Below are positions 2,620 to 41,871 of a DNA stretch of 64,000 bases, piece by piece. Location: the NCBI GenBank assembly GCA_002269645.1, contig NIVC01002653.1:1-64000 (forward strand), given 5' to 3'. Numbering within the stretch: the stretch's first letter is position 1; each line of letters starts with the position of its first letter. This DNA comes from Macrostomum lignano. Its lineage: Eukaryota. The notes under the pieces are model-generated. The model was given only the letters and a program-made list of their open reading frames with translations, had not been told where the DNA came from and did no database searches. The position numbers were made by a program, and so were the translations under genes.

Positions 2620-2714
2620 ATCGCAGAGCTGTACTTTGTAAAAAAACAATTTTACATATAAGCTGCTGCTAGCAACAGCTGTGGTATCGCTGGGCCTCCC
2701 AACCTTAGTCGAGC

Positions 2715-2850: not shown

Positions 2851-3000
2851 GGCGAAGATGGCGGAATCAGCAGCTTCTCTCAGCAGTGAGGGGCTTGAAG
2901 AAATGTGAGGACAGAAGATCCTCATTCATTTTCTGCCTGCCTGGGGGGTCTTTCTCAAAAGCAACTTATGATCGGCCATAGACGTAAGTTGGGGAGGAAG

Positions 3001-4698: not shown

Positions 4699-4888
<190 letters not shown>

Positions 4889-11500: not shown

Positions 11501-14500
11501 TTATTGTAGATGATCTCCTACAGTATCTGACTGTTAAGGGTCAGGTGACGTCCTACAGTATCTGAATATTTGGGGTCACGTGACCTCTACAGTATCTGAC
11601 TATTAGGGGTCTCGTGACCTCCTACAGTATCTGGCAATTAGGGGGTCAGATGACGTCTACAGTATCTGACTATTAGGGGTCAGGTGACCTCCTACAGTAT
11701 CTGACTATTAGGGGTCTCGTGACCTCCTACAGTATCTGGCAATTAGGGGGTCAGATGACCTCTACAGTATCTGACTATTAGGGGTCAGGTGACCTCCTAC
11801 AGTATCTGACTATTAGGGGTCAGGTGACCTCCTACAGTATCTGACTATTAGGGGTCATGTGACCTCCTACAGTATCTGACTGTTAGGGGTCAGGTGACCT
11901 CCTACAGTATCTGACTAATAGTGGTCGAGTGATCTCTTAAGCTCAGCCCAGTGAGTATTTCTGAATAACCAAACGCCTTACTTTTCTAGGATCGTCTGTG
12001 CACGAGTGGAACATTGAACCGGCAACGCTCTTGGCGACAGCCTCCACGGACATGGAGTTCACGTCGGTGTGGTAGATCATGCGGAACCAGATGCCGAATA
12101 GCAGGGCCAGAAGCTGCTGCACTGCCAGGGGCTGACTGGCAATCACCCTGCGATTGGGGGGGGGGCGGATGGAGTAGCATTAAAAGCAATGTTGACCCTG
12201 ATAAACCTCTTGGGGTCACTTGATCTCAAATGGACTACTGGGGAGGGGGTCAGGTGACCTCCTATGGACTACTCGGGGTTAGGTGACCTCCGATGGACTA
12301 CTGGGGGGTCAGGTGACCTCCTATGGACTACTCGGGGTTAGGTGACCTCCGATGAACTACTGGGGGTCAGGTGACTTTCGATTGACTACTGGAGGTCAAA
12401 GGACCAGAGGTCAGGTGACCTCCAATGGATTTATGGGGGTTGAGTTAACTTCGACAGACTCCTAGGGGATCAAGTGACCTCCTACTGACTACTAGGGCCC
12501 AGTGACCTCTAGGGGCGTGGCAGATGACCTCAGGCAGAAGCCTACATTGAAAGCCAAGCCTACCCAAATCAATATAAAGATGACTCAAAGCTCATAGTCT
12601 TGCAAGTCTTCTTGTTTTCGATTGCTAAGCAGGAAGGCTATGGAATAATAACATTGGCTAAACGAGGTCAAAAGATGATGCTGCATCCGGGCAGCTGGGC
12701 CGTGACCTTTGCAGGAGAATACAACACAGTCAATTCACCTCATGATAAATATGGCAAAGCCTGGGCCTGCAGAATCTAGTTTGGCATCCCAATAATAGAT
12801 GACGCAATCGCTTGGAATTGCCACAGCTTTTCCAGGAAACCGATTACGTAATAGCAACAGCGCGCTATATTCTTTCTACAATAAAAAACCCCCCCTCAAG
12901 ATACTCTATTGGTTCTATGCTGTCAAACTCCACTGCTTCATCCTCATTGCCGCTTGCTTCGTTAAGTTTCTACCGCGCGGGAGCTTCAAGGGCTGTTGAG
13001 AAGAACAATTCCCGAGGAGCAATGCAGTGAGATAAGATACTGCCATCGGATCCTCATAGGAAGCCAGCTCATTAACTGGGGAGACGATAACGCAGGTCTA
13101 CCGTATGGCAAGAGGCCTGTGAAACCACAATAGCTCTGAGGCCCCACCCTTAACGTTCTCGGGTTTCCGCCAGCTAGGAGGGTGCCGTAGCTCCCAAACC
13201 CCAATTTATTGTAGCAAAGAAAAGGCGTAGCCAGGAACACCCTACCTGTGTTCATCAATCAGGCTTTTTAGGCATTTTGCTAGAAAGCAAATGCAAGAAA
13301 CTCATCCGTTTTTTGCCTTCGAATACTGTTTATTAATATACAACACAAAGTGTACATAGCGGGGCCCAGATAAGAAACACATAATGTATATCAGGGGTAG
13401 GACCGAGATAACACAGAATGTACATCAGGGATAGGACCGAGATAACACGGAATGTACATTGGGGAGAGGGACGAGATAACACGGAATGTACATTGGGGAG
13501 AGGGCCGAGATAACACGGAATGTACATTGGAGAGAGGGCTGAGATAACACGGAATGTACATTGGAGAGAGGGCTGAGATAACACGGAATGTACATTGAAG
13601 AGAGGGCTGAGATAACACGGAATGTACATTATGGAGAGGGCTGAGATAACACGGAATGTACATTGGGGGGAGGGCTGAGATAACTCGGAATGTACATTGG
13701 GGGGGGGGACTGAGATAACTCGGAATGTACATTGGGGGGGAGGGACGAGATAACTCGAAATGAAACCACAGTAAAGTTGAACAGACTTGGATTAAGACCG
13801 CATGAATATTTTGAATTATAATACTAATGATATTTAATTACACCTGCCCTAATAGGCAGATGTACAACCGACAGCTCTGCCGCAGCCATTGCGCGGAGCA
13901 TCTGAAGGCTGCGTACGGCTGTTCAGTCTAAGGACTGGGGGGGGGGGGGGGGGGTCGCCACACACCCTCAATTACCCCAGCTATGGCACCCATTTTACAG
14001 CTGGGTGAATTGAAGCAATGCAGAGTTAAGTGTCTTGCTCAAGGACACAAATTGTTCCGAGTGGGTCGAGAATCGAACCCTCGACCTTTCAATCGTCATA
14101 TAAATATTGAATGCAATATGTAAATTTCGGCAGCAAAAGTCCCGCAGGCATCTAGAGCCAATTTAATTAAAGTCAGAGAAACTATTGCCGTATATTAATT
14201 ATGTGGAAACGGGAAATCATATTAATTAACCATGCCACCAAAAAATGCTACCTTAAAAGGTATGCGATACAGAAAGAGAGAGATTTTCTTTCTAACGAAC
14301 ACCCACGTTGTTAGGTAACCAGAAGTGGAGAGAAGCTACATTAGTTAAGCATACGGGTACGGTAGATCTATCAGAGCTGAAGTCTCCGCCAGGTGCAGCT
14401 CTGTTATCTGCATATGGACTGCTAAGCGAACTTATTGAATCTTTCACAGAATATTTAAATCTAAAATGTACATTCACGAATCTGTCAGACGAGGCCAGCT

Positions 14501-16121
14501 TTAGTTTGCGGTTTAAATCAAGCGAAATTATGCTAATAAAGTTTTATAATTCAGTTTATTAAACTAGTGTGAACATAAACCTGCGAATGCTTGGCTAAAA
14601 CCAGACACGATAAGTAAAACTGGTGACCTCAATGAACTTCACATTTCTCCTTAGATCTTCTTCTAACTTCACTGCCTTGCTGGTCAATGTTATAAACAGT
14701 TGTGTTTGGATTTCTGACACAAACCTGCAGCAATTCTTGGCACGCTAAAGCGGCCGAAGCGGTGGGCGGGCGGCGGTGACGGCCCAGGTTAGAAAGTGAA
14801 GATTCAGCCAAACTAAAGCAATCTAGTCTAGTCTAGGCTTAAGCACCCCAGCAGTTCACACAGCAAACCACACAATGACGCAAATCTTAGCATCATTGCC
14901 TGATGCTGGGGAACGAGCTAAATTGACAGGCACAGCCCCCACATGCTGATTCAAACAGGCTGCAGATGGTGTTGAGATATTTTAGCAAACAAGTTGAAGC
15001 GCGTTAAATTGAACTCGAAACTTGAAAATATTAGATTTTTTGTCTAAGTTCCAGGGAATAACTAGATTAGGGGAATGTCTACCTTCGGGAAACTACTAGA
15101 TTAGGGGAATGTATTACTTTTGGGGAATAACTAGAATAGGGGAATGTCCACCTTCGGGAAACTACTAGATTAGGGGAATGTATTACTTTTGGGGAATAAC
15201 TAGATTAGGGGAATGTATTACTTTTGGGGAATAACTAGATTAGGGGAATGTCTACATTCGGGGAATTACTAGATTGGGGGACTTAATTACCTTCAGGGAA
15301 CTACTAGTTTAAAGAATGGTTATACCTTCGGGGAACTACTAGAGTAGGGGAATGTCTACCCTCGGGGAACTACTAAATTAGGGGAATGCCTACATTCGGG
15401 AATTACTAGATTAGGGGAATGTCTACCTTGGAGGAATTACTAAATTAATGGAATGCCTACATTCGGGGAATTACTAGATTGGGAAACTTAATTACATTAA
15501 AAAACTACTAGATTAGGGGAATGTCTAGTTTTGGGGAATAACTAGATGGGTAATTACGCTCCTACACTATGAGTATTGTAGCCCTTGGCTTGGTAAGGTT
15601 TTATCAATAATTTCTGTCTGCCTCAATCAAACTAATGCCAACGTAACACATTTCAAACTGTGTACTAACCGCAACCAGCTTTGCTTAACTCTCGCTCACC
15701 CGTGCATGATCCGGACCCGGTGCTCGTGCGAATCGCCACCAGCGCCGACGTCCAGCGCGCCAAGCAGGGTCGCCTCGCCAGTCTTGCCGAACACTCCGTC
15801 GGGAATGGCCAGCAAGAACTTCTTGGCCACGTTGGCCACCGTCCAGAAGTTGTAGTCGGACCAGTCCACTGGCCGGCCCTCCGCCAGGCATTTGATAATT
15901 TTGCGCATCTGCACCGGGTTGCCGGGCCGGCGGAACAAGTCGCAGACTGCAACTCCATCGCGGGCGATGTGGATCAGCAGGTCGCGCAGCGGCGGCGGCA
16001 GGGGGCCGGAGCCGAACACCTGACCGGCTGGCTGGCCAAATTTTAGTCGACTAGACGAGATTCGCCGATGGCCCTGACGTCTGTCGCTGACGCAGGAGAA
16101 GAGCGAACGGATGATGGACAT
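5587..16121 (-). CDS. RhoGAP-domain protein, 7 coding exons
   Basis: Exons 16121-15700, 12147-11982, 11470-11308, 9371-9294, 8275-7989, 7427-7335, 6078-5587, all GT-AG with matching phases. RhoGAP motifs KFGQP...DLFRRPGN (arginine finger), [15 protein letters not shown]...[15 protein letters not shown]; Q/P-rich C-terminal tail. Confidence 0.85.
6260..6845. repeat. G-rich ~17-bp minisatellite (GGAGTGGGGTGGGTGAA), G-quadruplex-prone
   Basis: Direct; RhoGAP last intron. Confidence 0.95.
8390..8582. repeat. ~38-bp degenerate minisatellite (GCTATTTTTAGAACCGAAGCTTGTACATGCCGTCCGAT)
   Basis: About 5 tandem units. Confidence 0.85.
9455..9866. repeat. 28-bp minisatellite (GCAACTGAGGATCTGGGAGGCTGGCCCA)
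   Basis: About 15 tandem units. Confidence 0.95.
10675..11120. repeat. Purine-rich 14-16-bp minisatellite (GAGAGATGAAGGGA)
   Basis: Direct. Confidence 0.95.
11510..11935. repeat. ~37-bp minisatellite (GGTCAGGTGACCTCCTACAGTATCTGACTATTAGGG)
   Basis: About 11 units; a related array with the same GGTCAGGTGACCTCC core lies at 12225-12510 on the other side of the 12147-11982 exon. Confidence 0.9.
12225..12510. repeat. Degenerate minisatellite sharing the GGTCAGGTGACCTCC core
   Basis: About 8 degenerate units. Confidence 0.8.
13385..13760. repeat. ~34-bp minisatellite (GAGATAACACGGAATGTACATTGGAGAGAGGGCT)
   Basis: About 11 units. Confidence 0.95.
13935..14095 (-). mobile_element. CORE-SINE fragment
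   Basis: Minus strand reads GGTTCGATTC (Pol III B box) then GTGTCCTTGAGCAAGACACTTAACTC...CAGCTGTAAAATGGG, matching the MIR/CORE-SINE core consensus from memory. Confidence 0.7.
15055..15550. repeat. ~35-bp minisatellite (AACTACTAGATTAGGGGAATGTCTACCTTCGGGG)
   Basis: About 14 degenerate units in RhoGAP intron 1. Confidence 0.9.
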
Positions 16122-16789
16122 TGCGAGGTTTGGGGCAGACGCAATCTTACTGTTTCTTGTCTTGGATTCGAAGCAATTGCCTGCTCAGCTGCTCTCAGTG
16201 AGCAAAAGGCATCAAAGTGCATATAATCGAAAATATAATTAATAGTATTAACAGTAAGTGCATATTAACATAAAATATGTTTCAGTAGTTAAATAAATAG
16301 GATATAGAGAATAATAAACTTATGGTAAGTTACTAGATTATACGTTTACAGTATAAGACCCAGTTAACTTGAGGCTTATATATATAATCTGAACAATCTG
16401 GCCAATTCTTAACGCAAATTATATATGTACTTGCCAACTTGAAATTGGCTAAAAGAGATAGCATGTATCTGACTAAAGATATATCTGCTATCTCTAGCAA
16501 AAAAATTATTCTTTTTTTAAATTAAAAAAGTATCACTTTTTTACACAAATTGTTAGCTTCTAGGTGATTAATGTTAAATTATAGATTTCTATATTAGTCA
16601 TAAATAATCATCAAGGTAGAATAATCTCTAAGAAGCAAGTTTAAAAATAAAAAATCATAGCTATTCTAAATAGTTTTTTAAGTAATAAGTAATTTATAGC
16701 CTTGTAGACAAAATGAACTACCTGTATATGATTCTTTAAAACATAATTCTTATATCTAAAAATTATAAATTAAACTCTTGGCATTTTCT

Positions 16790-16974
16790 CAGTGGCGCAA
16801 CCAGGGGGGAGGGGGGGTCGCCCCCCCCCCCTTAGGCGGGGAACCGAAAAAAAATCAAAGGGGGGACCAAGTGAATTTTCGCCAAAAACAGAGCCACCCT
16901 CTGCCGCCCCCCTCCCGGGACTTTACCCTCAGAATCCGCCCCCCCCCCTTGAAAAATTTCTGGTTGCGCTACTG
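16790..16974. mobile_element. hAT-type MITE
   Basis: TIRs CAGTGGCGCAACCAG...CTGGTTGCGCTACTG; perfect 8-bp TSD CATTTTCT. Confidence 0.85.
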
Positions 16975-17165
16975 CATTTTCTGTATAAGAAGCAGTGTAT
17001 TATATTTAAATAATAATTAGTTGAAAATGAGATCCATTATCTAGATACAAAATGATTAAATCAAAAATGCTACAGTAACTAGTAATTCTAGCATAATATC
17101 TTCTGCTTTACTACAGTAAACACCTAAGCCTGAGACAAATAGTTGCATCAATAGCAAAGTAGAAC

Positions 17166-17276
17166 GGCAATCTTCCTCTTTCGTTCGTTTAATTATTTCC
17201 GGAATTATTTCGCCCTCTATTCAAGGGTGGTGGGGGGTGGGGGTTGGAATTAAACGAACGAAAGAGGAAAATCGCC
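17166..17276. mobile_element. Mutator-like MITE (111 bp)
   Basis: ~29-bp TIR GGC(A/G)AT(C/T)TTCCTCTTTCGTTCGTTTAATT; 9-bp TSD AAGTAGAAC/AAGTAGAAT (1 mismatch). Confidence 0.7.
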
Positions 17277-18910
17277 AAGTAGAATCACTTTGATAGTTTA
17301 TTAAAAAAAGAAAAGCAAAACAGAAATTTCTCTTGTTTGAAACACGTAAGCTGGTTCACCTTTTCTAAACTAATAACGCTTTTACATAGCACATCCTAAT
17401 AAAAACAGTTAATAACTATCACCAAAGTCGATGGCTGACCATGCACGATGAAGCATAGTCACAAATCGAATCCCGAAAACAAATATAAACTAGGTTAGGC
17501 TAGCAGTATTGGCAAGTGAGTAAAAAATAAACATAAAAGTATCAGGAAGATGACAATTATTGTTAACTGCTTAGTTTTTTTAGTAGATTCGACAATTCGA
17601 TGGACCGTGGAACCTTACTTAATAAATTCAGCTTCATTTCGGTTAACTTTTCGGAAATTGCATCTTGGAAACAAGGAAATTGTATTAGTCAAAATGTGTT
17701 AATCTAAAAAACGAAATTCTTTTTGCTTTTAAACTTAAGTAATTAAAAAAACTTTAAGCAGTCAAATTTTATTTTTTAAACTTTCTTTTCTAGCAAAAAT
17801 GTTTTGAGCACATATAAGTTTTGTTTAACAGAAGTAAATGTTAAAAACCCGATTTGACAGTCAAAAGTTCATAGTTCGACACTGATGTACGACTAACGAC
17901 ATTAATAAAATGCTAGCTTCCTCACTTTCACTTTTTCGCCTTTCGATTAATTCAAAAAATGAGAAATAAAATGAAAGCATCTTGTCTTGTTTCACTTCCT
18001 TCTCTTATTCTCTCTCTCTCTCTCTCTTTCTCATATATTTCATGAGCGCGATTTTCTTAAATTTATATTCTACATCTTCAGCACTACTTTAATGCTGTAA
18101 CAAAACAAACAAAGTCTAGTTATATAAAAATATCAGTTTAAAGCTGTGCGCTTTTCAAGTCTTTAATGCATAAAAGTAATTCTGAAATCAAATTATAATG
18201 TGCGCCGGTACATGAATGAGAAAAAATCGTAGCACACGACAGGACTGGTTCACTCAAAATTTGTTTCCTTAGTTCAACGGAATTCGCTGCTTAGCCAATG
18301 TTTCGTTCTTGCTTAAATTGATTGACAATTGTCAATCAGATTACAATTGTATGAATGCATGATCATCCCGACTATAAACGTTGGCTAATACGCAAACACT
18401 GAACATGAAAAAATGTCTAGATCAAGCACGTCTTCTACATAGATGGTATAGTCAAAAATCTTCCTAATACTATAAAGTTTTTAATCGCTAGGTTAATTTT
18501 TCAACCAAGGACTACTCAAGTAACATATATCTACTTCAGTTGTCCTAATTGTTTTAAAGGCCCTTTCACATCTGCCATTAAAATGTAAATGTAAATTAGC
18601 ACTGCAATATGCTTCCTGTGTTGCGTTGCGGTGTTAAATTTCCTGCCAAACTCACTTGAAGATCTGCGTGGGGGGGGGGGTCGTACAGCTCCATGCCAGT
18701 GAATCGAACCCTGACTCGATCAATTTATTCTATATATGGGCCAGTTGCAAAGCTGGGCCAGCTTTGTTGCTAAGTCGATCGTCTCCAAGAACGAATACGA
18801 TAATTATAGCTGAATCAAAGGTTTTTGCAGCCAACAGTTTCATTTCGAATTGACATTTGCTTCAAATTCTTTTGTTATTTTTTACCAGTCAAGTAACGAA
18901 CCCTTGCAGC

Positions 18911-20028
18911 ATGACTAATATTCCGGATTTGAGAATGGTTCTACTGCTGAGCTGCTTGATGCTGACAGGTACGATAAACCTCTAGGATTCAAGTTTACTC
19001 AGGTACAAAAACACCGTTAAAAGTTCATTGATTGCCGTAATTTCCATCTCCAATAAACCGAAACCAGGCGCAGAGGCAGCCAAGCCGTCGGTTCTCATCA
19101 GCGGCGCATTTTACCACAGAAACTCCGGCACGAACCCGACCACCATTGAAATGTCGCAGAGCACTTCCAGTTGGCAGTTCGCCTGTAGTTGGATCCGAAG
19201 TAGCTCGAACGAGAATCCCGTCTTGGCAGTTGAAGCACCTGTGAGAATAATATTTATCTGTAATATTGTGCGGCTTCTTTTAGTAACTGTGACTAACTGC
19301 CCCCACTGAGCCTTGAAATCACAAAAATTCTCTCCATGAGCCACAGCATTTCAACAATTCATACCCCATGATCCTTGATATCTCAGCAATTCCCACATTA
19401 GCATTGTGCAACAGAATTTTAGCAATTCCCCAATATGTGTCTTTTATAGCTGCACCCAAACCCTAACCTGACCTCGGGACTTTGCTACTCTGGGAGGCGT
19501 CTTTGTTGTTGTTCTTCTTCTTCTTCAGTCCTTTTCTCGCCTCGCGGCGTGGACGCTCTGCCGCCGACTCACTGGCAGGTCTTTCGATGTCTGGCCATGT
19601 TCGTGCGGGCCAGCATCCTCCCGCAGTCCGGGCACGGAGCTCTGGCGCTCTTGTAGATCCGCGCCGTAATCCCCGTCGTCTGCTGGCCTCTCCCCGTTGG
19701 TACTGCTGCTTCTTCTGCCCTCTCGTCCGGTGTCGCGCCCGCCTCTGGTTTCCTTCCGTTCTCCTTGCACCGTTTCCTATGCGCGCGTGGTTGGACTTGC
19801 TTATCCACTTGTTGCACTCTCCGCAGTGGACTTCTTTCGCCGATCGCTCCTCTCCTCCGCACCTCTTCTGGTGGTTTTTTCTTGTCGCCTCCGTGAAGAA
19901 GGTAGCGTTGCACTTTAGGCACGGCAGCGGTGTCTTCGTAAATTGATGGTGTATCCTCCGTTGGTGTACGGCTAACCCGGCTCTCGACGCGCACACCTTC
20001 CCGCAGTCCTTGTTCGCTTCATTCTTTT

Positions 20029-20099
<71 letters not shown>

Positions 20100-20431
20100 A
20101 TATTTTCCGCAGCAGTTCCTCACTCTCTCTCTCACTTTCGGCAAAGCTTTCAACCTTACTGTTGTTTCGAGAGGTGCCTGGGTCGGTTAGGTCCAAGCCA
20201 CTCTGTTGCGAGGAGGTTTGCCCATAGACCGCGGCTGTTACGCCGAGGCTACGGGCCTCTCTCCCCCCCCCGATTCTGCTTTGCCAACCGGGTTGCTCCG
20301 GTTGCCCGCTTGGCACCGCGTGTTGACGGCACGCTTCGTGGAGGTGCAGAATCTTGCCAAGCTTTGTTGTTTTTTGTTGTTTCTTTGTTGTTGTTGCTAT
20401 TATTGTCGTCGTCGTCGTCGTCGTCGTCGTC

Positions 20432-20462
<31 letters not shown>

Positions 20463-22917
20463 TTGTTGTTGTTGTGTGTGGAATGCGGCTCCATCAGATG
20501 GGGACCCAATCGAGGGCACCCAGGAGCCGCGCCACCGCGTGACCATCGGCCAGGTCGCTGAGGTTTTGCACTCCGTGCATGCGGCGAGTCGAGTCCAGGG
20601 CAGGACAGATCAGGATATGGAACTGGGTCACCTCGTCCCCGCACAGCCTACAGGCGGCCTCGTCGGTCGTCCCGATGCGCTTCTTATAATAAGCCGAAGC
20701 CGGACAGTGGCCTGCACGGACTTGCGAGACGAGGACCTTCTGATTTCTGGGGCCGTCGTGGCAGGTAAGGCTCCCCGAGTAGACATCTTTCAGGTGTCCC
20801 TCCAGGACGGGCTGGTACCGGACGGACCTGCGCAGCAGACTCTTGGACGCGGCTAGCGCTAGCGGAACGTGCTGTTGTGGCAGGCCCGTGGCCCGTTTTG
20901 CCTCCCAATCGGCCAGCTCATTGCCGTCGACGCCCACGTGCCCCGGGATCCACTGTATGGTGATAGCTGTGACCCGAGTAGCACTGCGAATGAGGCCCTT
21001 GAGCTCCTCGAGCAGGATGTCGGTGGTGGTACAGTCGGACAGTCGGCTTGGATGGCACGAATAGCGGCCTGGCTGTCGGTTAGGATGGCAGCATTTGGCA
21101 GACCCTCCGTAAGGATGTCACCCAGGGCCATAGAGAGGGCACGGAGCTCAGCTTCGAAGGAACTGCACCATCTGCCGGCCGCTGCACTCCCCGAACGGAT
21201 GATCTGGTCCTGACTGCTGCAATACAGGATCCAGGCCGCACCGCCAAGCTGGGTGCCGCTAGTGGCCGATCCGTCAGTTTAGTAGCAAGTGTCAGGGAGG
21301 CGCGCTCTGCGAGTCTCCTGAAAAAGGTCGCGCCTGACCTGGATGTCGTCGGACTTGCTGCAGGGGCTGACGAGTTCTGGAAAGAGGCGAAGTCGTTCCA
21401 TACCGTTAAACGCTTCCCAGGGGGGCGCTCGAATCCATGAGTTCGGAAGCCTCTTGAACGGAAGGAGATTGGCCAAAATTCTGTTCGCTTGCTCCCGGAG
21501 TCCACGGTTGGCCTTGAGGTGGACGTCGGCCTCGCGCTCGCAAATCTGGCGCCAAGGGTCGTTGGTCGGTCTTCTTTTAGCTTTTTCAACGGCGATGAGG
21601 GCTCTCCGCTTGGCCTCGACACCAATGGGGTCGCAATTTGCTTCCTTGTAGACGGCCTCGCAGGGAGTTGACTTCGGCAATCCAGTAATAAGTCTCAATG
21701 CCTACCGCTGGGCCCGGTCTAACTCCTCTAACCTGGTTTTGGGCAGCCATGGCATCCAAGCCGCAGCCGCATGCCAGGCGACGGACTCGACAACCGCCTT
21801 GTAGACAGTGCGGAGGGTGTCGCAGTCCCAGCCTCACTCTCTGTGAGCCAGGGCACGGAGGATTCTGCAACGGCGGTGCATTTTCGAAACAACTTCGTCC
21901 GTCTGGCGCTTAAAGATCAGGCCGTCGTCTATCCAGACGCCGAGGTAGCGGACTCCACGCTTGGTAGGGAGACGAATGCCAGAGATTGACAGGTTCAGAG
22001 GGCGATTTCGCTCGCTCCGATCGCGCGTATAGAGACAGCACTCAGATTTGGCGGGGTTAAGATCGATTCTCAAGTCGGCCGCCCAGTCTTCGATGCGGTT
22101 GAGCGCAGACTGAATACGAGATTCCAGCTCGTTAGTGTTCCGACCAGTAGTCCAAATGCCGAGGTCATCAGCGAATCCTCCGTAGCAAACCTGGGGGACC
22201 AGTTTGTCCCGCCAGGCGTTAATGTACAGGAGGAAGAGGATGGGAGAGCTGACGGCCCTCTGGGGCACCCCTTCGCGTAGGGGGCGCCACTTGCCGACTG
22301 CCTCGCCGACACGCACGGCGATTTGACGCCCCTCCAGAAAGCTGGCAAACCAGCGAATAATACGGCCGGGCAGGCCTTCATCCATGAGACGAGCCAGGAG
22401 CTTGGCTCGCCACTCTCGAACGCTCTAGAGCAATCGAGCGTGACTGCCAGAGTCTTGAGGTGGGGCCTTCCCATCCGCCCTGGATTTCTTGCACGAGGCG
22501 GGCAATCTGTTCCTCGCAGCTCCAGCCGCGTTGAAAGCCCGCTTGGCAGGGCTGCAGAGTGCCGTTGGTCTCGAGCCAGTGCATCAGCCGGTCCAGCACC
22601 ATCCGCTCCATGAGTTTAACGCAGATGGACGTAAGGCTGACGGGCCGGAAACTGGAGCACCCGTTTACCCGTCGACCTTTACGGACGGCCTGGAGCCACG
22701 GTTCCAGCTCCTACCCGGCGCCGCGTCTACGTCGCGGAGGGAAGGCACCCAATTCAACGGGTGTCGAAGAGCTCCGGAAACTCGGACACCTTGTGTCCCA
22801 TCGGCTTGTTGTTGTTGTTGCTGTTGTTATTGCTGTTGTTGTTGTTGTTTTTGTTGTTGCTGTTGTTGTTGTTGTTGTTGTTATTGTTGTTGTTGTCGTT
22901 GTTGCTGTTGTTGTTGC

Positions 22918-22964
<47 letters not shown>

Positions 22965-23971
22965 TTGTTGTTGAATGCGGTGAGCCTCTCCTAAAGGGGA
23001 CACCAACCGATGGCCCCTAGGTGAAGCGCCACTACGTCTGCACGAGCGAGTTGACACATTTCGGTAATGCCGTGAGTACGGCGTTGGACGTCCAGGGCCG
23101 GGCAGTTGAGGGGGTGGTACTGATCAACCTCTTCCGCGCAGAGATGGCAGTTGCCCCCGACCTTAATGCTGATGCGGTTGCGGTAGTAGGTCGATGCAGG
23201 ACAGTGCCCGGCGCGGACCTGCGAGACCAGGACCTGTTGTCTGCACGGGCCCTCATGCATCGTAATCTTTTGGCCATAGACATGTTGGGCGAGTAGTTAA
23301 CAGCCCGTCGGATGCGGGCCCTCGCCGAATCCAGGGTGATGCCGACATGTTCCTGAGGCAGCGTGGCCGCTAGTTTGGCCTCGGCATCCACAAGTTCGTT
23401 TCCGGGGATTCCGGCGTGCCCGGGCACCCACTGCAGGATGATCTTCGAACGACGGGCGGCGGTGATAAGGCGTTCCTTAACGCTCTCCACGAGCGGGTTG
23501 GTTGATGGTCGATCGGATTTTAGAACCGCGATGGCGCTCTGGCTGTCGGTGAGAATGGCAGCCTCTTTCGGGGGGTTGGCAATTATGTCGCTTAGCGCCT
23601 GAAAGATGGCGATAAGTTCAGCCTCAAAGGAGCTGCACCAGCGGCCCGCGGCCAACCGCGGCTCTGGCTGATGGAGCCGTCCTGGCTCAAGAGAATCCAG
23701 GCCGCACCTCCGTTTTCAACGCCACCCGAGACGGATCCGTCGGTGAAGTAAGTGGCGGCGTTCGGGCAGCGCGCGGTCGTGGTGGCTTTGACCGCCTGGA
23801 CGGCGTCGGTTTCAAGTGGCTCGAACAGCAGCTTAGTGAACATGCGCACTCTGGCGTCGGCCAACGAGTTCCAGGGTGGGAGCCGGATGTGGCTGTTGGC
23901 AAGGCGCTGATTGTTGTTGTTGTTGTTGCTGTTGCTGTTGTTGTTGTTTTTTTTTTTTTTGTTGTTGTTGC

Positions 23972-24018
<47 letters not shown>

Positions 24019-25954
24019 GCGGAAGGTGGTCTAGGGCTGCCTATGCAGGCAGTCCAAGAACCTAGCCACCAGATCGCCATCGGCCAAGTCCTCCAGTTGG
24101 TGTAGGTCCGTCGCGTGCCGAGCTCTTGCCAGGGCCGGACATTCGAGGAAGTGGCCCTTGTCTTCATAGAGGTCGCACCGGGGGCATCTGCTATCCTCCC
24201 TAGAGCCAATTCGGTGCTGATAGTACGCCGTGGAAGGATCGTGACCGGCTCGCATTTGAGCTATGGAAACCTGAAGCGCGCGGGGCGAGCGGGCATCGAG
24301 GGGGTCTTGCTGTAGATCCGCTTCAGCCGGTCATTCAGGAGAGGCTTGTAGTTGATGAGACGGCGTACACGGCTGCGGGCGGCCTCGATGTCGATCTCTA
24401 GAATGTCCTGGGGGAGCAGACAGGCGTTCTTGGCCTCGACGTCGGCTCTCTCGTTACCGGGAGTCCCAGAATGACCTGGGATCCACTGCAGGACCACGTC
24501 GGCGTGGCTCTCCACCTGTGTCAGCTTGCGCTTGAGCAACTCGAGCAGAGGGTTCAGGGAGTGTTGCCGACCTTTGAGCGCCGCAATGGCCGATCGGCTG
24601 TCGGTGAGGACCAGGGCAGAGTCCTGTTTAGTCTCAAGGATGTGATCCAGGGCGAGGTGCAGAGCTGAGAGTTCAGCTTGGAACGAGCTACACCAACGCC
24701 CGGTAGCAGCTCCCTCAATCCAAACCACCTGGCCCGAGATAGGGGCGACCGCCACACAGGCTGCCCCTCCATTCTCAGTTCCTTCTGATGCAGACCCGTC
24801 GGTGAAGTAGTGGATCTTGCGGTCGCCCCATGATTGAATGGTGTCTTCCGTCGCCGACCGCCTGGTCTCTGGCGGATCGTTCCTGGAGATCGGCTGAGTC
24901 AGGTGTTCGCAAAGGGTGACCCGATCCTCAATTCTCGGAAGCCAGGGCTCGTTCCTGATCCAGTTCGATTCCCGGCGTGGGCAATGCAGAATCTGCTCGG
25001 ATTCCAGCTTGGCTTGGTCCCGGAGGCCTTTGTTAGCTTTGAGCCTGCGCCGGCTTTGGTCTTCGCAGAGGCTGCGCCAAGGGTCGTAGGCAGGCCGCCT
25101 GAGGGCCTTCTCGACAGCCAGCAGGGCTCTTCTGTGTCCTTCAACGGAAATGGGAACGGTTCCGAGTTCGAGGTATACGGCCTCCTCCGGAGTGGATTTA
25201 GGGAGGCCGGCCACGATTCTGAGTGCTGCCCGTTGAGCCCGTTCGAGTTCGTTCAACCGGCTTTTGGATAGCCAAGGTAGCCAGGCCGCTGCCGCGTGCC
25301 ATATGACAGATTCGACCATGGCGGTGTACGTACGCATCAGCAGCTTACGGTCCCAGCCCCAGCTCCTTTGCGCTAGCGCTCTCACGATGTTAGTGCGTTT
25401 GGCCATCTTTTCTTTGACCGTTTTGACTTGTTGAGCAAAGATGAGTCCACGGTCGATCCAAATACCGAGGTATTTGAGAGACTCAGTGAAGCGAAGTTGA
25501 GTGCCGGCAAGATGGAGATCAGGTGGCCGATCAAAGTCGGCCCGGTTCCTAGAGAAGAGGCACGCCTGGGTTTTGGCTGGGTTAACCGAGATACGGAGGT
25601 CTCTGGTCCAGGTTTCGATGAAGTCCAGGGCGCTCTGTAGCTTTCTGGTGAGGTTCTGAAGGCTACTGTCAGTAGCCCATAGGCAGAGGTCGTCAGCGAA
25701 TCCTCCAAGTTGAACTTCAGTTTCAGGGAAGCCAGTCCAATCATTGACGTAAAGGAGGAAAAGGACCGGGGAGCACACCGCTCCCTGAGGAACTCCACTG
25801 GTGATGCGGCGCCACTTCCCGGTGGTGTTGCCGATTTTGGCACAGATAGTTCTACCTTCCAGAAAGTTGGCTAGCCAATGCGTCATACGATCGGGCATGT
25901 CTTCGTCCATCATCCGATTAATGAGCTTGTCGTGCCAAACTTTGTTGTTGTTGC

Positions 25955-25985
<31 letters not shown>

Positions 25986-28137
25986 AGTCAGGGCATGCAT
26001 GACTCTCACTCCTACGAGCTTGATCTTAGAGAGTGCTTCGACGCATGACTCTGTCGGCTAATGAAGTGCATGAATATAATAAGCCAGCCCCAAACTCTCG
26101 CATTCCGCATCACACAGACTCAGAGGAGCTCCAACAACTGCCAGTTCAGCTCGGCCAGCGGGCCAGCCGGCTGCACACCCTCCAGTATGAAATTCGCCAC
26201 TGATGACGGACAGTACCAGAGCTCGAACCTGACCTGCAGGGAGTCCGGCAACTCTCTCACCTGCTCCGCTGGCATTGTGGGCGGCTTCAATCCGCTTCAC
26301 ATCGGGCCGTGGTTCTGCAAGAGTCTGATGGATGAACAAGAGGATGGCATATTTCTGCAGTATTACAGTAAGTAAAAATTTGGGACTATAGGTGAAGGTG
26401 AGGGAAGTAAGCATCTCGTAACAGTTGAGTGAAAGCGAAGTCAGTAGGGTGCAGCAATTCGCAGTGTTCAGTGCAGGCTCTTTGCTCCGCCTGAGAGAAC
26501 TTAAATGCAAAAGCCAAGGACGACTTGAGTAGAAGGATGGAAAAACTCGTTTCTTAGAAAAATTTAGAAGGCAGGTTTTTCCGAAAAAAATTTACGTAGA
26601 ATAAAAAATTCACATAGAACCCTACTTCTTTGAACTAAAAGCCTTATGAATATCGATAGAGCAATAAAAAAGGCACAACATATCAAAAGATGAACACTGG
26701 AGCTGCCTCCTATCAAAAGCAATAACAATTTTTGTGCTGAAAAAATGAAAACTTTCTATCTCCGTAGTGTATTTTTTCTAAGAAACGAGGTTTTCCGTCC
26801 TCCTACTCAAGTCGTCCTTGGCAAAAGCAAGCTAGGAAAAATGTCCCGACTCTCATCACTCCTAATATGCATTTTCGGGCTTCTTTGAACTCCAGTGTGA
26901 TTTATAAAACTGAAGAAGGAATTGATTCTTAAGAATATGTGCTTTTTTAATGCATTTGCATGAATATTTTTTGCCCTTGCTTATTGAGCGCCCCGGAGGG
27001 GGTCACTAGATTCCTAGTATTTAGAGCTGAAATACTCTACTTATTAGTAGTAATTTGGTAAAACTTTGGTAAAACAAAAAAAATCAATCTGCAGAAATTC
27101 TGCCCCAGAGCAGCCTGGCGCTGGTCAGCTGGGACCCCCTACTGGCAGACGGCGGCAACTCCAGCGCCAGCAGATTCGAGTGCTTTACCAAGGAGGCCGT
27201 CATCCCGCCTGCTCGGCTGACTTTCTACCTGGACGGAGTCGAACTCGCGACCAGCTCAAATCTGGTCGATTGGCTGTCAGACAATTTGTACTCGCCTCGA
27301 CCGACAATGTACTCGCTGAATAAGACTGATACGACTGTTGAGCCGCCTGTCAGAGGCTTGAGCTGTGAGGACCTTCGCTTCTCCCACACAAGATCAATCA
27401 GTTTCAGACCCATTCTAACATCACCATGACGCAATAAATTTGACAAATAGTTGCACAATTAGGACACGATAGCGACATTAACCTGACACGATAATCTGAC
27501 AGAGTATATATTGAATTAGTCAGAGAGAAACTTGGCTCAGACTCGGCTCAAACTCGGCTCAAACCTGGCTCAAACATGGCTCAAACATGGCTCAAACTTG
27601 TCTCAAACTTGGCTCAAACATGGCTCAAACTTGGCTCAAACTTGGCTCAAACCTGTCTCAAACTTGGCTCAAACCTGGCTCAAACTTGGCTCAGACTCGG
27701 CTCAAACTCGGCTCAAACCTGGCTCAAACCTGTCTCAAACTCGGCTCAAACCTGTCTCAAACTTGGCTCAAACTTGGCTCAAACCTGTCTCAAACTTGGC
27801 TCAAACTTGGCTCAAACTTGGCTCAAACCTGGCTCAAACTTGGCTCAAACTTGGCTCAAACCTGTCTCAAACTTGGCTCAAACCTGGCTCAAACTTGTCT
27901 CAAACCTGGCTCAAACCTGTCACATCTCCACTCGCAGTGAACCAGCAGCTGCTGGCCTCCAGTCGCAGTGTCCAGCTGAGCAGCCAACTCAGGAACTGCA
28001 GCGGTCAGACGTTGGTCTGCTCGGCCAGTCAGGGCCTCTCGCACAGCCACAGCAGGGCCAGCAGCAACCTGACCATTGTGTTTGGAGACGGCCAGGCAAA
28101 TGATGGTTCAAGTGGTGAGACAACGGGAAGTAAGTGA
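18911..28137 (+). CDS. IgSF protein A: signal peptide + V-like Ig + C2-type Ig (secreted if ending at the 28135-28137 stop; may splice onward)
   Basis: Exons 18911-18968 (MTNIPDLRMVLLLSCLMLT), 19068-19240 (WQFACSW), 26118-26367 (IGPWFC), 27095-27364 (FECFTKEAVIPPARLTFYLDG), 27938-(28114/28129/28137) (GQTLVCSASQ); phases 1/0/1/1 consistent. Confidence 0.75.
19502..20025 (-). mobile_element. 3' end of an RTE-like non-LTR retrotransposon (element D): C2H2-type zinc fingers, (GAA)4(CAA)3 tail
   Basis: KDCGKVCASRAGLAVHQRRIH, CLKC...H, CGEC...H, CPDCGRMLARTNMARHRKTC-stop, then short UTR and GAAGAAGAAGAACAACAAC. Confidence 0.65.
20026..20362 (-). mobile_element. Poly(A)-tailed retroposed fragment (element E), 68-nt perfect A tail
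   Basis: T-run at 20031-20098 on +; about 264 nt of unassigned sequence between it and the (AAC)n tract of element C. Confidence 0.45.
20363..22805 (-). mobile_element. 5'-truncated, decayed I-group (Ingi-like) LINE, element C: RT + RNase H + CCHC-type C-terminus + (AAC)n tail
   Basis: FRPVSLTS, EGVPQ, GGFADD; in-frame stop in TCY*TDGS; AAGRWCSSFEAEL; QVRAGH...CRLC...H...C; several frameshifts; stop at 20494, ~20-nt UTR, degenerate AAC tract 20363-20474. Confidence 0.9.
22806..23910 (-). mobile_element. 5'-truncated I-group (Ingi-like) LINE, element B: RNase H + C-terminal Cys/His motif + (AAC)n tail
   Basis: YFTDGSVSGGVENGG, AAGRWCSSFEAEL, LTDSQ, WVPGHAGIPGNELVD, QVRAGH; stop at 22991, 18-nt UTR, AAC tract 22806-22972. 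Confidence 0.9.
23911..25943 (-). mobile_element. 5'-truncated I-group (Ingi-like) LINE, element A: RT (partial) + RNase H + C-terminal Cys/His motif + (AAC)n tail
   Basis: About 560 uninterrupted codons from KVWHD through GVPQG, GGFADD, YLG, FTDGS, WIPGHSGTPGNERAD; one frameshift before RAGH...CPRC; stop at 24031, 12-nt UTR, AAC tract 23911-24018. Confidence 0.92.
25944..25985 (-). repeat. Near-perfect (AAC)14 tract abutting the 5' end of element A
   Basis: Direct. Confidence 0.95.
26513..26822. mobile_element. Non-autonomous DNA transposon with ~50-bp TIRs
   Basis: GCCAAGGACGACTTGAGTAG...CTACTCAAGTCGTCCTTGGC; flanked by AAAA on both sides (possible 4-bp TSD). Confidence 0.75.
27531..27920. 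repeat. 11-bp minisatellite (AAACTTGGCTC)
   Basis: About 35 units ending about 17 nt before the acceptor at 27937. Confidence 0.95.
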
Positions 28138-28660
28138 AAGTGAGGTAGAGTGAGCAGAGAGTAAAAGAAAGTGTGGTAGAGTGAGCGGGGAGTAAGAGAA
28201 AGTGAGATAGAGTGAGAGAGGAATAAGAGAAAGTGTGGTAGAGTAAGCAGAGAGTAAGAGAAAGTGTGGTAGAGTGAGCGAGGAATAATAGAAAATGTGG
28301 TAGAGTGAGCGGGGAGTAAGAGAAAGTGAGATAGAGTGAGAGAGGAATAAGAGAAAGTGTGGTAGAGTGAGCGAGGAATAATAGAAACTGTGGTAGAGTG
28401 AGCGGGGAGTAAGAGAAAGTGAGGTAGAGTGAGCGGGGAGTAAGAGAAAGTGAGGTAGAGTGAGCGGGGAGTGAGAGAAAGTGAGGTAGAGTGAGCGGGG
28501 AGTAAGAGAAAGTGAGGTAGAGTGAGCGGGGAGTAAGAGAAAGTGAGATAGAGTGAGCGGGGAGTAAGAGAAAGTGAGGTAGAGTGAGCGGGGAGTAAGA
28601 GAAAGTGAGGTAGAGTGAGCGGGGAGTAAGAGAAAGTGAGATAGAGTGAGCGGGGAGTAA
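28135..28660. repeat. ~31-bp purine-rich minisatellite (GAGTGAGCGGGGAGTAAGAGAAAGTGAGGTA)
   Basis: Direct. Confidence 0.95.
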
Positions 28661-29104
28661 GCACTGATAACTCAAATGTGATACACAACTCAGCTAAAAA
28701 ATGAAGTCATGCATTTATCCAGCCTGAGTGAAAATCAGCATTCCATGAGTCACAGGCTGAGGTTGCCAAACAACGAGGCTTCATTCCTTTTAGAGCGGAA
28801 TATTGAACAAGTCTACATGTCGTGCATGCCATTATGGCCCAATTAGCATTGCTGAAGCAGGTCGACAATTCACTCAGAGATTTCCTGTCTCTGTGTCAAT
28901 GAAAATGCATTGGGTAGAACGAAAACATTGCCAAGTTGCTAATGGCGTTGCTACGGTAAACAAATCCGAGGCTGCGAATAGACCGAATGGACTATATTTG
29001 GCGCACAAGAGCAGGGTGAAGGCATGTTTGATATTATTTGAAACCCCTTTTTCATACGGTCGTTGTAAAACAGAAAATATTTAACCCCTGTCTTAATTTG
29101 AGAA

Positions 29105-29215
29105 ATGATTTTTTTCTTTGTGAATTTCGTCATGATCTGTTGTATCAGCAATCAAGGTAAGCAAAGAGGTTGGGATATAAAAGAAGAGGGAGAGTGAGGG
29201 AGAGTGAGGGAGAGT

Positions 29216-29294
<79 letters not shown>

Positions 29295-32200
29295 GGAGAG
29301 TGAGGGAGAGTGAGGGAGAGAGAGTGAGAGAGAGAGTGAGGGAGAGTGAGAGAGAGTGAGGGAGAGTGAGGGAGAGTGAGAGACAGAGTGAGGGAGAGTG
29401 AGGTAGAGTGAGGGAGAGTGAGAAAGAGTGAGGGAGAGTGAGGGAGAGAGAGAGAGTGGGAGAGAGTGAGGGAGAGTGAGGGAGAGAGAGAGTGGGGGAG
29501 AGTGAGGGAGAGTGAGAAAGAGTGAGGGAGAGTGAGGGAGAGTGAGAAAGAGTGAGGGAGAGTGAGGGAGAGTGAGGGAGAGAGAGTGAGGGAGAGAGAG
29601 AGTGAGGGAGAGAGAGAGAGAGAGAGTGACGGAGAGTGAGGGAGAGTGAGGGAGAGTGAGAGAGAGAGTGGGGGAGAGTGAGGGAGAGTGAGGGAGAGAG
29701 AGAGAGAGAGTGGGGGAGAGTGAGGGAGAGTGAGGGAGAGTGAGAAAGAGTGAGGGAGAGTGAGGGAGAGAGAGAGAGTGGGAGAGAGTGAGGGAGAGTG
29801 AGAAAGAGTGAGGGAGAGTGAGGGAGAGTGAGGGAGAGTGAGAGAGAGTGAGGGAGAGTGAGGGAGAGTGAGGGAGAGGGAGGGAGAGTGAGGGAGAGTG
29901 AGGGAGAGTGAGGGAGAGTGACGGAGAGTGAGGGAGAGTGAGGGAGAGTGAGAGAGAGAGTGAGAGAGAGAGTGGGGGAGAGTGAGGGAGAGTGAGGGAG
30001 AGTGAGAGAGAGAGTGAGAGAGAGAGTGAGAGAGAGAGAGAGTGGGGGAGAGTGAGGGAGAGTGAGGGAGAGTGAGGGAGAGTGAGAAAGAGTGAGGGAG
30101 AGTGAGGGAGAGTGACGGAGAGTGACGGAGAGTGAGGGAGAGTGAGAGAGAGAGTGAGATAGAGAGTGAGGTAGAGTGAGGTAGAGTGAGGTAGAGTGAG
30201 GGAGAGTGAGGGAGAGTGAGGGAGAGTGACGGAGAGTGAGGGAGAGTGAGGGAGAGTGACGGAGAGTGAGGGAGAGTGAGGGAGAGTGAGAGAGAGTGAG
30301 ATAGAGAGTGAGGTAGAGTGAGGTAGAGTGAGGGAGAGTGAGGGAGAGTGAGGGAGAGTGAGGGAGAGTGAGGGAGAGTGAGGGAGAGTGAGGGAGAGTG
30401 AGGGAGAGTGACGGAGAGTGAGGGAGAGTGAGGGAGAGTGAGAGAGAGTGAGATAGAGAGTGAGGTAGAGTGAGGGAGAGTGAGGGAGAGTGAGGGAGAG
30501 TGAGGGAGAGTGAGGGAGAGTGAGGGAGAGTGAGGGAGAGTGAGGGAGAGTGACGGAGAGTGAGGGAGAGTGAGGGAGAGTGAGAGACAGAGTGAGGGAG
30601 AGTGAGGGAGAGAGAGAGTGGGGGAGAGTGAGGGAGAGTGAGGGAGAGTGAGGGAGAGAGAGAGAGTGGGAGAGAGTGAGGGAGAGTGAGGGAGAGAGAG
30701 AGAGTGGGGGAGAGTGAGGGAGAGTGAGAAAGAGTGAGGGAGAGTGAGAGAGAGTGAGGGAGAGTGAGGGAGAGTGAGGGAGAGTGAGAGAGAGTGAGGG
30801 AGAGTGAGGGAGAGTGAGGGAGAGTGAGGGAGAGTGAGTGAGTGCAGAAAAGTTTCTTTCTAACTCCAAAACTCACATGTATCTCACAATGGCTATCTCA
30901 TGCAATAAAATACTCGTAGACGAAGTGATGGCGGAGCCAACCATAGTGATCAGCCGTCCGTACGCCAGGAACTTCAACACGGAGCCAAACACCATTGAGA
31001 TTCCGTTTGACCGGCCCTGGGAGTTCGCCTGCCGTTGGACCCGGCAGAATGCCAGCCAGCACCCTTTTCTGGCGATTGACGTACCGGTGAGTAAACTACA
31101 TCGTGGTCGCGTGGGCTCGAGCTCGATTTTGGTCCTGGGCTTGAACCATATTGTGGTCTCGAGCTCGAACCCTATTGGGGTCCCGGGCTTGAACCCTATT
31201 GTGGTCTCGGGCTCGAATCCTATTGTGGTCCCGGGCTTGAACCCTATTGTAGTCCCGGGCTCGAGCTCTATTGTAGTCCCGGGCTCGAGCTCCATTAAGG
31301 TCCCGGGCTAGAGCTCTATTTTGGTCCCGGGCTTGAACCCTATTGAGGTCCAGGGCTAGAGCTCTATTGTAGTCCCGGGCTCGAGCTCCATTAAGGTCCC
31401 GGGCTAGAGCTCTATATTGGTCCCGGGATTGAACCCGTAGCTATTGACATTGTCCTGCTGGGCTCGAGTTTTATTGTTGGCACAGGCTCGAAGTCCATTG
31501 TGATCCCGGGTTCGAACCCTATTGACGTGGTTCCGGGCTCGAACACTATTGTGGTCCCAGACTCGAATTTTTTGTGGTCACGGGCTCGAACTCTAATACG
31601 AGGTGAGTAGTTGTGTAATATCCAGTCGCCTCATTGGCACCGCAGGCCCAGCGAGGCTACAGCAACTGCCAGTTCGGGTTCGCCGGCAAGCCGCCGCAGT
31701 GCACTCCGTCCAGCGTGCAGTTCGCCGCGGACACCGCTGGGCAGCAGCAGAGCTCGAACGTCACCTGCCGGGAGTCTGGCAACAGCCTCACCTGCTCCAT
31801 CAGCTTAGAGGTGTTCAATCCGCGACATGTGGGCCTGTGGTCCTGTCGAAGTCTGTCGGACAGCAGGAATGACAGCGCCTACCTGCAGTACTACAGTGAG
31901 TCGCTTTTTAAGTCGCACAGCGCTAAATGGGGGTTGGCCATAGACAAAAACAGTGTGATGGATTTCGACCTTTCAGGCCCCTTGTGAGGAAGCCTTCGGG
32001 CCTCAGGCTCAGAAACAAATCACTTAGAGTCCTGGCCCCCCACTCCTGTCAGATGGTCAGCCCCATGGTAGCTTGATCGTGTGGCGAGCAGTCTAGGTCC
32101 TATAGCTAAGAGAGGGACAGCGAGAGACAAGCAGGGAGAATTTCGAAGGTAGAAATTAGCCAATCCGCAAATCAACTAACTCGCTGCCACCAGCCCGTGC

Positions 32201-34575: not shown

Positions 34576-34618
<43 letters not shown>

Positions 34619-34619
34619 C

Positions 34620-34652
<33 letters not shown>

Positions 34653-34711
34653 ATTAGTCAGTCAGTCAGTCAGTCAGTCAGTCAGTCAGTCAGTCAGTCA
34701 GTCAGTCAGTC

Positions 34712-34744
<33 letters not shown>

Positions 34745-41798: not shown

Positions 41799-41871
<73 letters not shown>

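Follow-up and report, generated by a model that had tools for sequence, protein, structure and literature searches.

We analysed 64,000 nucleotides (nt) of the Macrostomum lignano contig NIVC01002653.1 (positions 1 to 64,000, hereafter the window), in which a stack of ~6.5 kb comprises five retrotransposon copies, head to tail and in the same orientation, within one (AAC)n microsatellite. Repeat tracts were mapped with Tandem Repeats Finder together with direct reading; arrays that appear as TTG on the plus strand are AAC on the minus strand, on which all of the stack features described below are read. From 25985 to 19501, the minus-strand order is tract T0, element A, tract T1, element B, tract T2, element C, tract T3, element E, a run of 68 A (A68), element D and a terminal (GAA)5(CAA)3AAG, and both outer edges of the stack adjoin non-element DNA. 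All runs of at least four AAC units in the window lie inside the stack and on the element strand. An earlier model-made annotation (the sequence-only reading) had given the same element order and described the same AAC-bounded stack, and both the repeat mapping and our reading of the sequence agree with it. Its statement that no host DNA separates the elements is correct throughout, save for a leader of ~20 nt, A-rich, at the 5' end of D, which is the sole non-repeat, non-element sequence between units.

Anatomy of the stack

Elements A, B and C are 5'-truncated copies of long interspersed nuclear elements (LINEs). Element A (24018-25940) begins within the reverse transcriptase (RT) domain, continues through RNase H and a C-terminal RAGH...CxxC motif, and closes with a 13-nt 3' untranslated region (UTR) ending in CCGCA. 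Pfam detected RVT_1 (1.9e-18) and RNase_H (3.7e-14) in this copy, which in the tblastn frames has one frameshift near 24300 and a 582-amino acid (aa) open reading frame (ORF) without an in-frame stop. Element B (22974-23910), from a second family, begins in the linker before RNase H (Pfam RNase_H, 9.3e-12), retains the C-terminal domain, carries two frameshifts and has a 3' UTR ending in ...CCGCATT. Element C (20476-22805), from a third family, starts ~50 aa ahead of RT motif 1 and retains RT (Pfam RVT_1, 4.2e-13), RNase H and the C-terminal domain, the latter two detected by homology only, as well as a 3' UTR ending in ...GCCGCATTCC; its reading frame is broken by two frameshifts and at least three in-frame stops. 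RT, RNase H and a C-terminal Cys/His motif in one ORF are the hallmark of RNase H-bearing LINEs, and RAGH...CxxC...H...C is present in the translations of A, B and C. Protein identity is 48% between A and C over 464 aa, 42-50% between A and B and 45-58% between B and C. Given that identity at the DNA level is just 65-70%, we count three families. The earlier claim that A, B and C are distinct yet related RT/RNase H families is thus borne out, at 42-58% protein identity and with the motifs it had quoted found in the translations. The stack elements have no further copies in the window, where blastn and tblastn matched just A, B and C to one another.

Compared with a Macrostomum lignano RT (P0004), identity was 55% for A and 63% over 284 aa (the RT half) for C. 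The best other matches to the ORF of A were contigs at 37-44% protein identity, while the named database matches were arthropod proteins at 24-39% identity (among them P0015, 32%; P0018, 25%; and the "R1DM"-like P0024, 27%) and a fungal RT at 27%. Because they are 5'-truncated, A, B and C lack an endonuclease. The Exo_endo_phos domain of apurinic/apyrimidinic-type (APE) endonucleases was detected in the relatives P0004, P0027 and P0032, and the N-terminal, pre-RT part of P0004 aligns upstream of the RT in the DNA of three related loci (L001, L003 and L005, see below). P0004 was matched to no solved structure by sequence. LINEs with both RNase H and an APE endonuclease form the I group, which fits the RNase H seen here and the APE domain of the relatives.

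The tracts between the elements are individually distinct. T0 (25941-25985) reads (AAC)10 AGC (AAC)3 AAA, is bordered 5' by non-element DNA (...ccctgact) and 3' by element A, and was reported by Tandem Repeats Finder as 14.7 copies with 95% matches (TTG array, 25942-25985). It is either the 5' copy of the target-site duplication (TSD) of A or a remnant of the original tract. T1 (23911-24017; 35.7 copies, 92% matches) reads (AAC)15 AGC (AAC)3 (AAA)4 (AAC)4 AGC AAC AGC (AAC)5 AA. T2 (22806-22973; 56 copies, 87% matches) is a 56-unit AAC tract in which a pure (AAC)15 adjoins the 3' UTR of B and the distal part contains AGC, GAC, AAT and AAA units. T3 (20363-20475) reads (AAC)3 AAA (AAC)10 (GAC)9 AAT AAT AGC (AAC)3 AAAG followed by an A-rich AAACAACAAAAAACAACAAA, and is impure (20364-20475; 38 copies, 86% matches). 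Its (GAC)9 block, at 20405-20431 in plus-strand coordinates, is a variant unit that has itself expanded, indicating that this post-C tract is old and that slippage has continued. At the far end, (GAA)5(CAA)3AAG (19501-19526) consists of the GAA tail of D, seen as (TTC)5 on the plus strand at 19512-19526, and then the 13-mer AACAACAACAAAG (19513-19501), which adjoins non-element DNA and represents either a remnant of the original AAC tract or the 3' member of a pair of 13-nt direct repeats. These readings amend two counts of the sequence-only reading, which had the 5' tract as (AAC)14 and the 3' end as (GAA)4(CAA)3.

Element E (20099-20362) is a 264-nt retroposon whose first base, G 20362, directly follows the AAC tract and whose poly(A) tail is A68 (20031-20098), uninterrupted on the minus strand (20098-20031) within a plus-strand T run at 20025-20098. 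When 19400-20500 was searched with Rfam, two ribozyme models of the hepatitis delta virus (HDV) type matched weakly, though over their full length, at 20364-20269 on the minus strand, neither reaching its gathering score (RF00094, model 1-89, 25 bits against 50; RF02682, model 1-74, 22.5 bits against 44). A helix check at these sub-threshold matches defined a candidate HDV-like ribozyme at 20272-20362, with P1 (7 bp; 20362-20356 with 20314-20308, GCUUGGC/GCCAAGC), P2 (8 bp; 20353-20346 with 20279-20272, GAUUCUGC/GCAGAAUC), P3 (3 bp; 20345-20343 with 20317-20315, ACC/GGU), P1.1 (the CC of L3 with GG 20307-20306), P4 (7 bp; 20304-20298 with 20291-20285, CAACCGG/CCGGUUG) and GCAAA as J4/2 (20284-20280). 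All of the helices are perfect Watson-Crick helices and follow the nested double-pseudoknot order P1, P2, P3, P1.1, P4, with the C in J4/2; the oddity of the fold is a 19-nt insert in L3 with its own 5-bp hairpin (GCGUG/CACGC). A descriptor of this topology, with thresholds fixed after the sequence had been inspected, matched the E site and nothing else on both strands of the window (128 kb), whereas dinucleotide-shuffled stack sequence gave one match per 3.9 Mb and shuffled window sequence none in 2.56 Mb. The minimum-energy fold of this region was unexceptional (z = -0.72) in a program that does not model pseudoknots.

P1 begins at G 20362, immediately past the AAC tract, where cleavage would be expected. 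E is therefore most plausibly a complete retroposon of 264 nt, with an A68 tail and a candidate HDV-like ribozyme at its 5' end. The sequence-only reading had taken all of the copies for 5'-truncated LINEs, which is right for A, B and C and does not apply to E. No second copy of E was found elsewhere in the window or in the fetched loci of relatives. At the 5' ends of the relatives, neither Rfam nor a relaxed descriptor found a credible ribozyme.

In element D (19527-20030) we see the 3' end of a copy from another RT family. Its coding part, interrupted by one frameshift, specifies four C2H2/C2HC zinc fingers in tandem, and a stop codon (19569-19571) precedes a 3' UTR of ~42 nt that leads into (GAA)5; the ~20 nt at the 5' end of D may be foreign to it. 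A word-indexed search with D gave no match, and the RT family surfaced only in an exhaustive search, which returned short ORFs at 42-51% identity and proteins of 670-1060 aa with the finger module at the C-terminus. D is colinear with the last 130 aa of one of these relatives, P0050 (BLASTP, 8e-21), and RVT_1 lies upstream of the fingers in P0050, P0166 and P0190. The Pfam zf-C2H2 match to D itself was weak. D is from an RT family unrelated to A, B and C and carries a GAA tail. The motifs GHV.RM and DR..W, found before the fingers in this family, also occur in RTE/Jockey-type C-termini. The four-finger module (window 19569-20023; relatives P0045-P0058, P0050, P0166 and P0190) is also common as stand-alone short ORFs, in ENA contigs of up to 700 kb.

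AAC tails and insertion sites of related elements

We examined the contigs of twelve homology matches (L001-L012) for their 3' ends and junctions. In 8/8 close copies (A, B and C as well as L001, L002, L003, L005 and L008), the 3' end is ...CCGCA followed by a tail repeat, with CCGCA directly before the repeat or at most ~10 nt away; in A, B and C it lies at 24018-24022, 22979-22983 and 20489-20493, respectively. The 3' UTRs of this clade are very short (10-30 nt), and CCGCA may be a site of RT recognition or initiation. The tail repeat is (AAC)n in seven of the eight. L001, L003 and L005 each have a stop codon, a UTR of 15-30 nt and ...CCGCA plus (CAA)n, the contig of L008 ends at ...CCGCAACA, and L002 (2119-2165) ends in CCGCA(AC)9(AAC)3 rather than in pure AAC. 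The tail repeat may thus switch between AC and AAC inside the clade. Outside this group, AAC tails without CCGCA were found in L004, from the barnacle Amphibalanus (32% identity), as (AAC)6-7, and in L011 (35% identity); the tails of L001, L003, L005 and L011 are (AAC)5-8 or longer. The more distant relatives L006, L007, L009, L010 and L012 (24-33% identity) have no AAC tail. Relatives at 32-44% protein identity to A are therefore AAC-tailed as well, in line with the earlier suggestion that these families carry AAC tails, and to judge from these 3' ends the (AAC)n tail is a property of the elements themselves, common across the clade. Two scans of metagenomes added no relatives: peptide patterns from a narrower alignment matched 381 stretches, with zero relatives among them, and the DNA pattern CCGCARCAACAACAACAAC matched 120 loci, none of which had LINE homology.

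We also considered where these copies inserted. L008 is truncated at around nt 224, where homology to the upstream ORF of L001 starts, and has (AAC)3-4 directly 5' of it in AT-rich DNA. For L002 the target was GCAGCAACAGCAAAG, of which 7 bp (CAACAGC) are duplicated around the copy as a TSD; this TSD opens with CAAC, continuous with the tail. A 5' junction with AAC-like sequence was therefore present in both of the close relatives in which the junction is visible (L008 and, in part, L002). Element A, too, is flanked 5' by an AAC tract that itself lies beside non-element DNA; as the DNA that T0 abuts is unlike the 3' ends of the elements, T0 is not merely the tail of another copy. The junctions fit a preference for AAC-like sites, which would be stronger in the subgroup with CCGCA. 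In a further locus, L003 (3465-5486), the tail continues directly into a 673-aa ORF whose N-terminus is CAA-rich (Gln/Asn) and which has a zinc knuckle and a weak Asp_protease match; this copy seems to have entered the gag of a long terminal repeat (LTR) retrotransposon at its CAA-rich coding start.

Insertion history and competing explanations

The whole 45 nt of T0 (25985-25941) are repeated exactly at 24002-23958, after five AAC units of the tail of A. In shuffles of the units of T1, an exact 45-nt match was reached 146 times in 20000. The repeat looks like a TSD of 15-45 bp for which both nicks fell within the tract, and T1 then reads as a new A tail (at least five units), the 3' copy of the 45-nt duplication (24002-23958) and the older tract that preceded B. 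This perfect duplication marks A as having inserted independently, in the tract that then lay upstream of B, and for A it overturns the earlier statement that no TSD other than AAC itself is present. For B and C the correspondence is looser. The pattern AGC-AAC run-AGC-AAC run-AAT that flanks B 5' and the pattern AAT..AGC (AAC)3-4 AA that flanks C 5' each recur in the 3' tract of the same element with changed unit numbers, which is compatible with TSDs. In T1, T2 and T3, the longest pure run adjoins the upstream element and the interruptions are distal, as expected if a fresh tail is laid down before an older tract. The sequence-only reading had each insertion regenerate the target; this holds for A, where a fresh AAC run was left after the 45-nt duplication, while the corresponding tests for B and C were not significant.

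Several features bear on the relative ages of the copies. Tract purity falls from the A side to the C side (95, 92, 87 and 86%), and disabling lesions number one per 1.9 kb in A, two per 0.94 kb in B and at least five per 2.3 kb in C. A68 of E is unbroken, while the adjoining T3 has decayed. The purity gradient, the perfect duplication of A, the lesion load of C and the intact A68 together suggest that C and D are old, B is intermediate, and A and E are recent. There are three copies of the 13-mer AACAACAACAAAG in the window, one at the T0/A junction (25952-25940), one in T3 (20395-20383), 20 nt before E, and one after (GAA)5 (19513-19501). An E-D block, or D alone, might have the last two as its TSD.

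We lean, with a little better than even confidence, towards independent insertions, directed by pairing of tail and target, into a single AAC tract that grew in the process. On this reading, target-primed reverse transcription (TPRT) would have hit a host (AAC)n tract several times, in separate events. The RNAs of A, B and C, from an APE-type, RNase H-bearing clade, would end in a very short 3' UTR, ...CCGCA and (AAC)n. After an endonuclease nick on the GTT strand, the freed (GTT)n 3' end would anneal to the (AAC)n tail of the RNA and prime cDNA synthesis. Such priming would make AAC-containing DNA a favoured, though not obligatory, target, and pairing of tail and primer would then be the cause of the target preference. 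With a second nick 15-45 nt downstream, the product would be a duplicated piece of the old tract, a usually 5'-truncated element, a fresh and pure AAC tail, the second copy of that piece and the remainder of the old tract. As each insertion would lengthen and renew the tract, the site would gain target sequence. E, whose 5' end was probably generated by the candidate HDV-like ribozyme it carries, and D would have arrived at the A-rich 3' edge of the tract, either successively or as one chimera.

A number of observations weigh against this reading. L004 has a perfect 10-bp TSD, GTCATCACTT, in non-AAC DNA and is 5'-truncated in the RT, and the 5' flank of L011 has no AAC. Only three 5' junctions of the AAC-tailed clade outside the window are confidently readable, of which one (L004) is non-AAC. 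The junction sample is thus small, the comparison copies come from other genomes and none from the source genome, and, with no endonuclease in the window copies, cleavage specificity is not readable from them. The 45-nt match was noticed, and its shuffle test chosen, after the fact, and the match could stem from conversion or unequal exchange between tracts. For B and C, an exact-suffix TSD test was not significant, the patterns matching only loosely. The lesion densities do not differ significantly (Poisson P ~0.2 for A), nor is any of the age indicators significant alone. Finally, a TSD of the entire stack is an equally good reading of the first and last copies of AACAACAACAAAG. The earlier proposal of insertion into AAC tracts is thus upheld for the A duplication and the L008 and L002 junctions; a target that is strictly AAC for the clade is not shown, given the non-AAC flanks of L004 and L011.

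The AACAACAACAAAG copies at both ends of the stack fit a single insertion equally well, and a single template-jumping event had been put forward as the alternative by the sequence-only reading. In such a composite insertion, TPRT would start on D RNA, and the RT would jump from D to the poly(A) of E and on to the AAC tails of C, B and A, leaving a 13-bp TSD in an (AAC)n site. Template jumping by LINE reverse transcriptases is established, the units all share one orientation with only the ~20-nt A-rich leader between them, and E, copied precisely to a ribozyme-defined 5' end, would offer a natural jump point. Four jumps among five different RNAs would be required, however, and the truncation points of A, B and C are internal rather than at RNA 5' ends. 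Nor would a copy of the 45-nt upstream target be expected from an RNA tail within the 3' tract of A, so that both the duplication and the internal truncations are left unexplained. Of the three copies of the 13-mer, one is internal to T3 and the 5' one takes its G from the start of a Val codon that belongs to A, and tract purity, lesion load and the pure A68 indicate differing ages. We therefore regard a single composite event as distinctly unlikely.

A different possibility is that the elements do not target AAC at all, the tracts being mere tails at a permissive or fragile site, either the microsatellite itself or a gene-poor, minisatellite-rich and possibly subtelomeric region, with endonuclease-independent, break-primed entry or simple survival accounting for the accumulation. 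The distant AAC-tailed copies in non-AAC DNA (L004 and L011) are consistent with this, as are the landing of elements with other tails (the poly(A) of E, the GAA of D) and the minisatellites that crowd the window on both sides. Single copies with AAC-like 5' junctions were found, however, in two unrelated assemblies in AT-rich or ordinary DNA, the TSD around A implies staggered nicks inside the tract, and a search of the window found no telomeric repeat array; we consider the absence of targeting unlikely. Every join of the stack lies in a microsatellite of 45-170 bp, which is typical of assembler or recombination joins, and separate AAC-tailed copies might have been brought together through their AAC tracts by misassembly or by unequal or ectopic recombination. 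The tracts are nonetheless long, individually interrupted and uncollapsed, many other long tandem arrays are resolved in the window, which suggests a long-read assembly, and neither the 45-nt duplication nor the strict shared orientation is expected from random joins. We regard an artefact or later rearrangement of this kind as very improbable.

Beyond separate insertions into a growing tract, we can envisage a metazoan, possibly flatworm, clade of RNase H-bearing LINEs with true (AAC)n specificity that makes self-renewing landing pads shared by several families, with E exploiting read-through of the stack to obtain a precise 5' end. We regard this extension as conceivable but doubtful.

The window is rich in minisatellites on both sides of the stack (1-19000 and 27500-61500). 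On the left these include a 17-mer x35 (6263-6845), a 28-mer x15 (9451-9863) and a 35-mer x12 (11511-11926); on the right, an 11-mer x35 (27528-27916), a 31-mer x17 (28124-28661), a 10-mer x166 (29186-30842), (AGTC)88 (34572-34922), a 31-mer x21 (35178-35840), a GA-rich stretch of 1.3 kb (41154-42496) and arrays of a 45-mer (58642-59763). A tRNA scan and Rfam at gathering scores found nothing in the window. Two probable host exons were noted on the minus strand, one with a RhoGAP domain (15696-16121; a single database relative, 69%) and one in an ankyrin-repeat ORF (61437-61904). On the plus strand, a 504-aa ORF (62227-63741) gave weak Pfam matches to a zinc knuckle and to a gag-type aspartyl protease; it runs towards the end of the window and probably represents the gag-protease region of an LTR retrotransposon.

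Relation to known retrotransposons

If the preference is real, the AAC trinucleotide joins the short list of simple repeats that serve LINEs as safe harbours. The element-borne tails can create and lengthen genomic AAC microsatellites, and interruptions in such microsatellites mark TSDs that would otherwise be invisible, so that separate insertions can be distinguished from template jumping. With the candidate ribozyme of E, a new non-autonomous element would be added to those whose 5' ends are defined by ribozymes.

LINEs that insert into microsatellites are known with both types of endonuclease: among APE-type elements, Waldo in (ACAY)n and Mino in (AC)n, both of the R1 clade, and Kibi in (TC)n and Koshi in (TTC)n, both of the Tx1 clade; among elements with a restriction-like endonuclease, Dong in (TAA)n and Togen in (TG)n (PMC3812793, PMC4640811). 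AAC is absent from the LINE microsatellite targets in these sources (ACAY, AC, TC, TTC and TAA in PMC3812793; TG, for Togen, in PMC4640811), and our literature search found no AAC-specific LINE, with "(AAC)n" not reliably searchable as text. As for Waldo, Mino, Kibi and Koshi, the copies in the stack lie within a simple repeat that matches their own 3' end, and the relatives (P0004 and the upstream ORFs of L001, L003 and L005) have an APE endonuclease. The 3' end carries the target repeat in A, B, C, L001, L003, L005, L008, L004 and L011, and in L002 it is (AC)9(AAC)3, which resembles the repeat type of Mino. In contrast to those families, the repeat here is AAC, the clade bears RNase H, and specificity appears relaxed, with L004 in ordinary DNA with a normal TSD.

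In the I factor, with (TAA)n, and UnaL2, with (TGTAA)n, the tail repeat aligns with the primer and slips (see also PMC4176376, PMC1636434). The families described here are like these in combining a short 3' UTR with an element-borne unit repeat, and L004 behaves exactly so. To our knowledge, no accumulation of such families within their own repeat has been reported.

Zepp/ZeppL of Chlorella, Coccomyxa and Chlamydomonas, according to the account given in PMC8226300 (citing Higashiyama 1997), insert into copies already present and so build nested tandem arrays of one orientation, in which 3' ends predominate owing to 5' truncation. On that account, the stack shares with Zepp the same-orientation, 5'-truncated copies and the insertion into the tail region of an existing copy, as indicated for A upstream of B. 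Zepp, as described there, is L1-type, has poly(A) and forms one large cluster per chromosome, whereas the stack has AAC tails, RNase H and three families in one tract of 6.5 kb.

Ribozyme-headed retroposons are known from L1Tc/NARTc (Pr77/L1TcRz), from the 5' ribozyme of R2 and from R2-derived, non-autonomous short internally deleted elements (SIDEs) (PMC3185411, PMC3383444, PMC3774820, PMC3414825). E is like NARTc in its ~260 nt plus poly(A) and in a candidate HDV-like fold that starts from the very first base. As in these retroposons, it is sited where read-through transcripts of upstream copies would need 5' processing; it is unlike them in its L3 insert and in Rfam scores at half of the gathering score, and it is a single copy, a candidate from sequence alone. 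With precedents in microsatellite LINEs, in Zepp and in ribozyme 5' ends, the stack falls within known kinds; it leaves current concepts unchanged and is a clean example of known mechanisms with a well-resolved insertion history.

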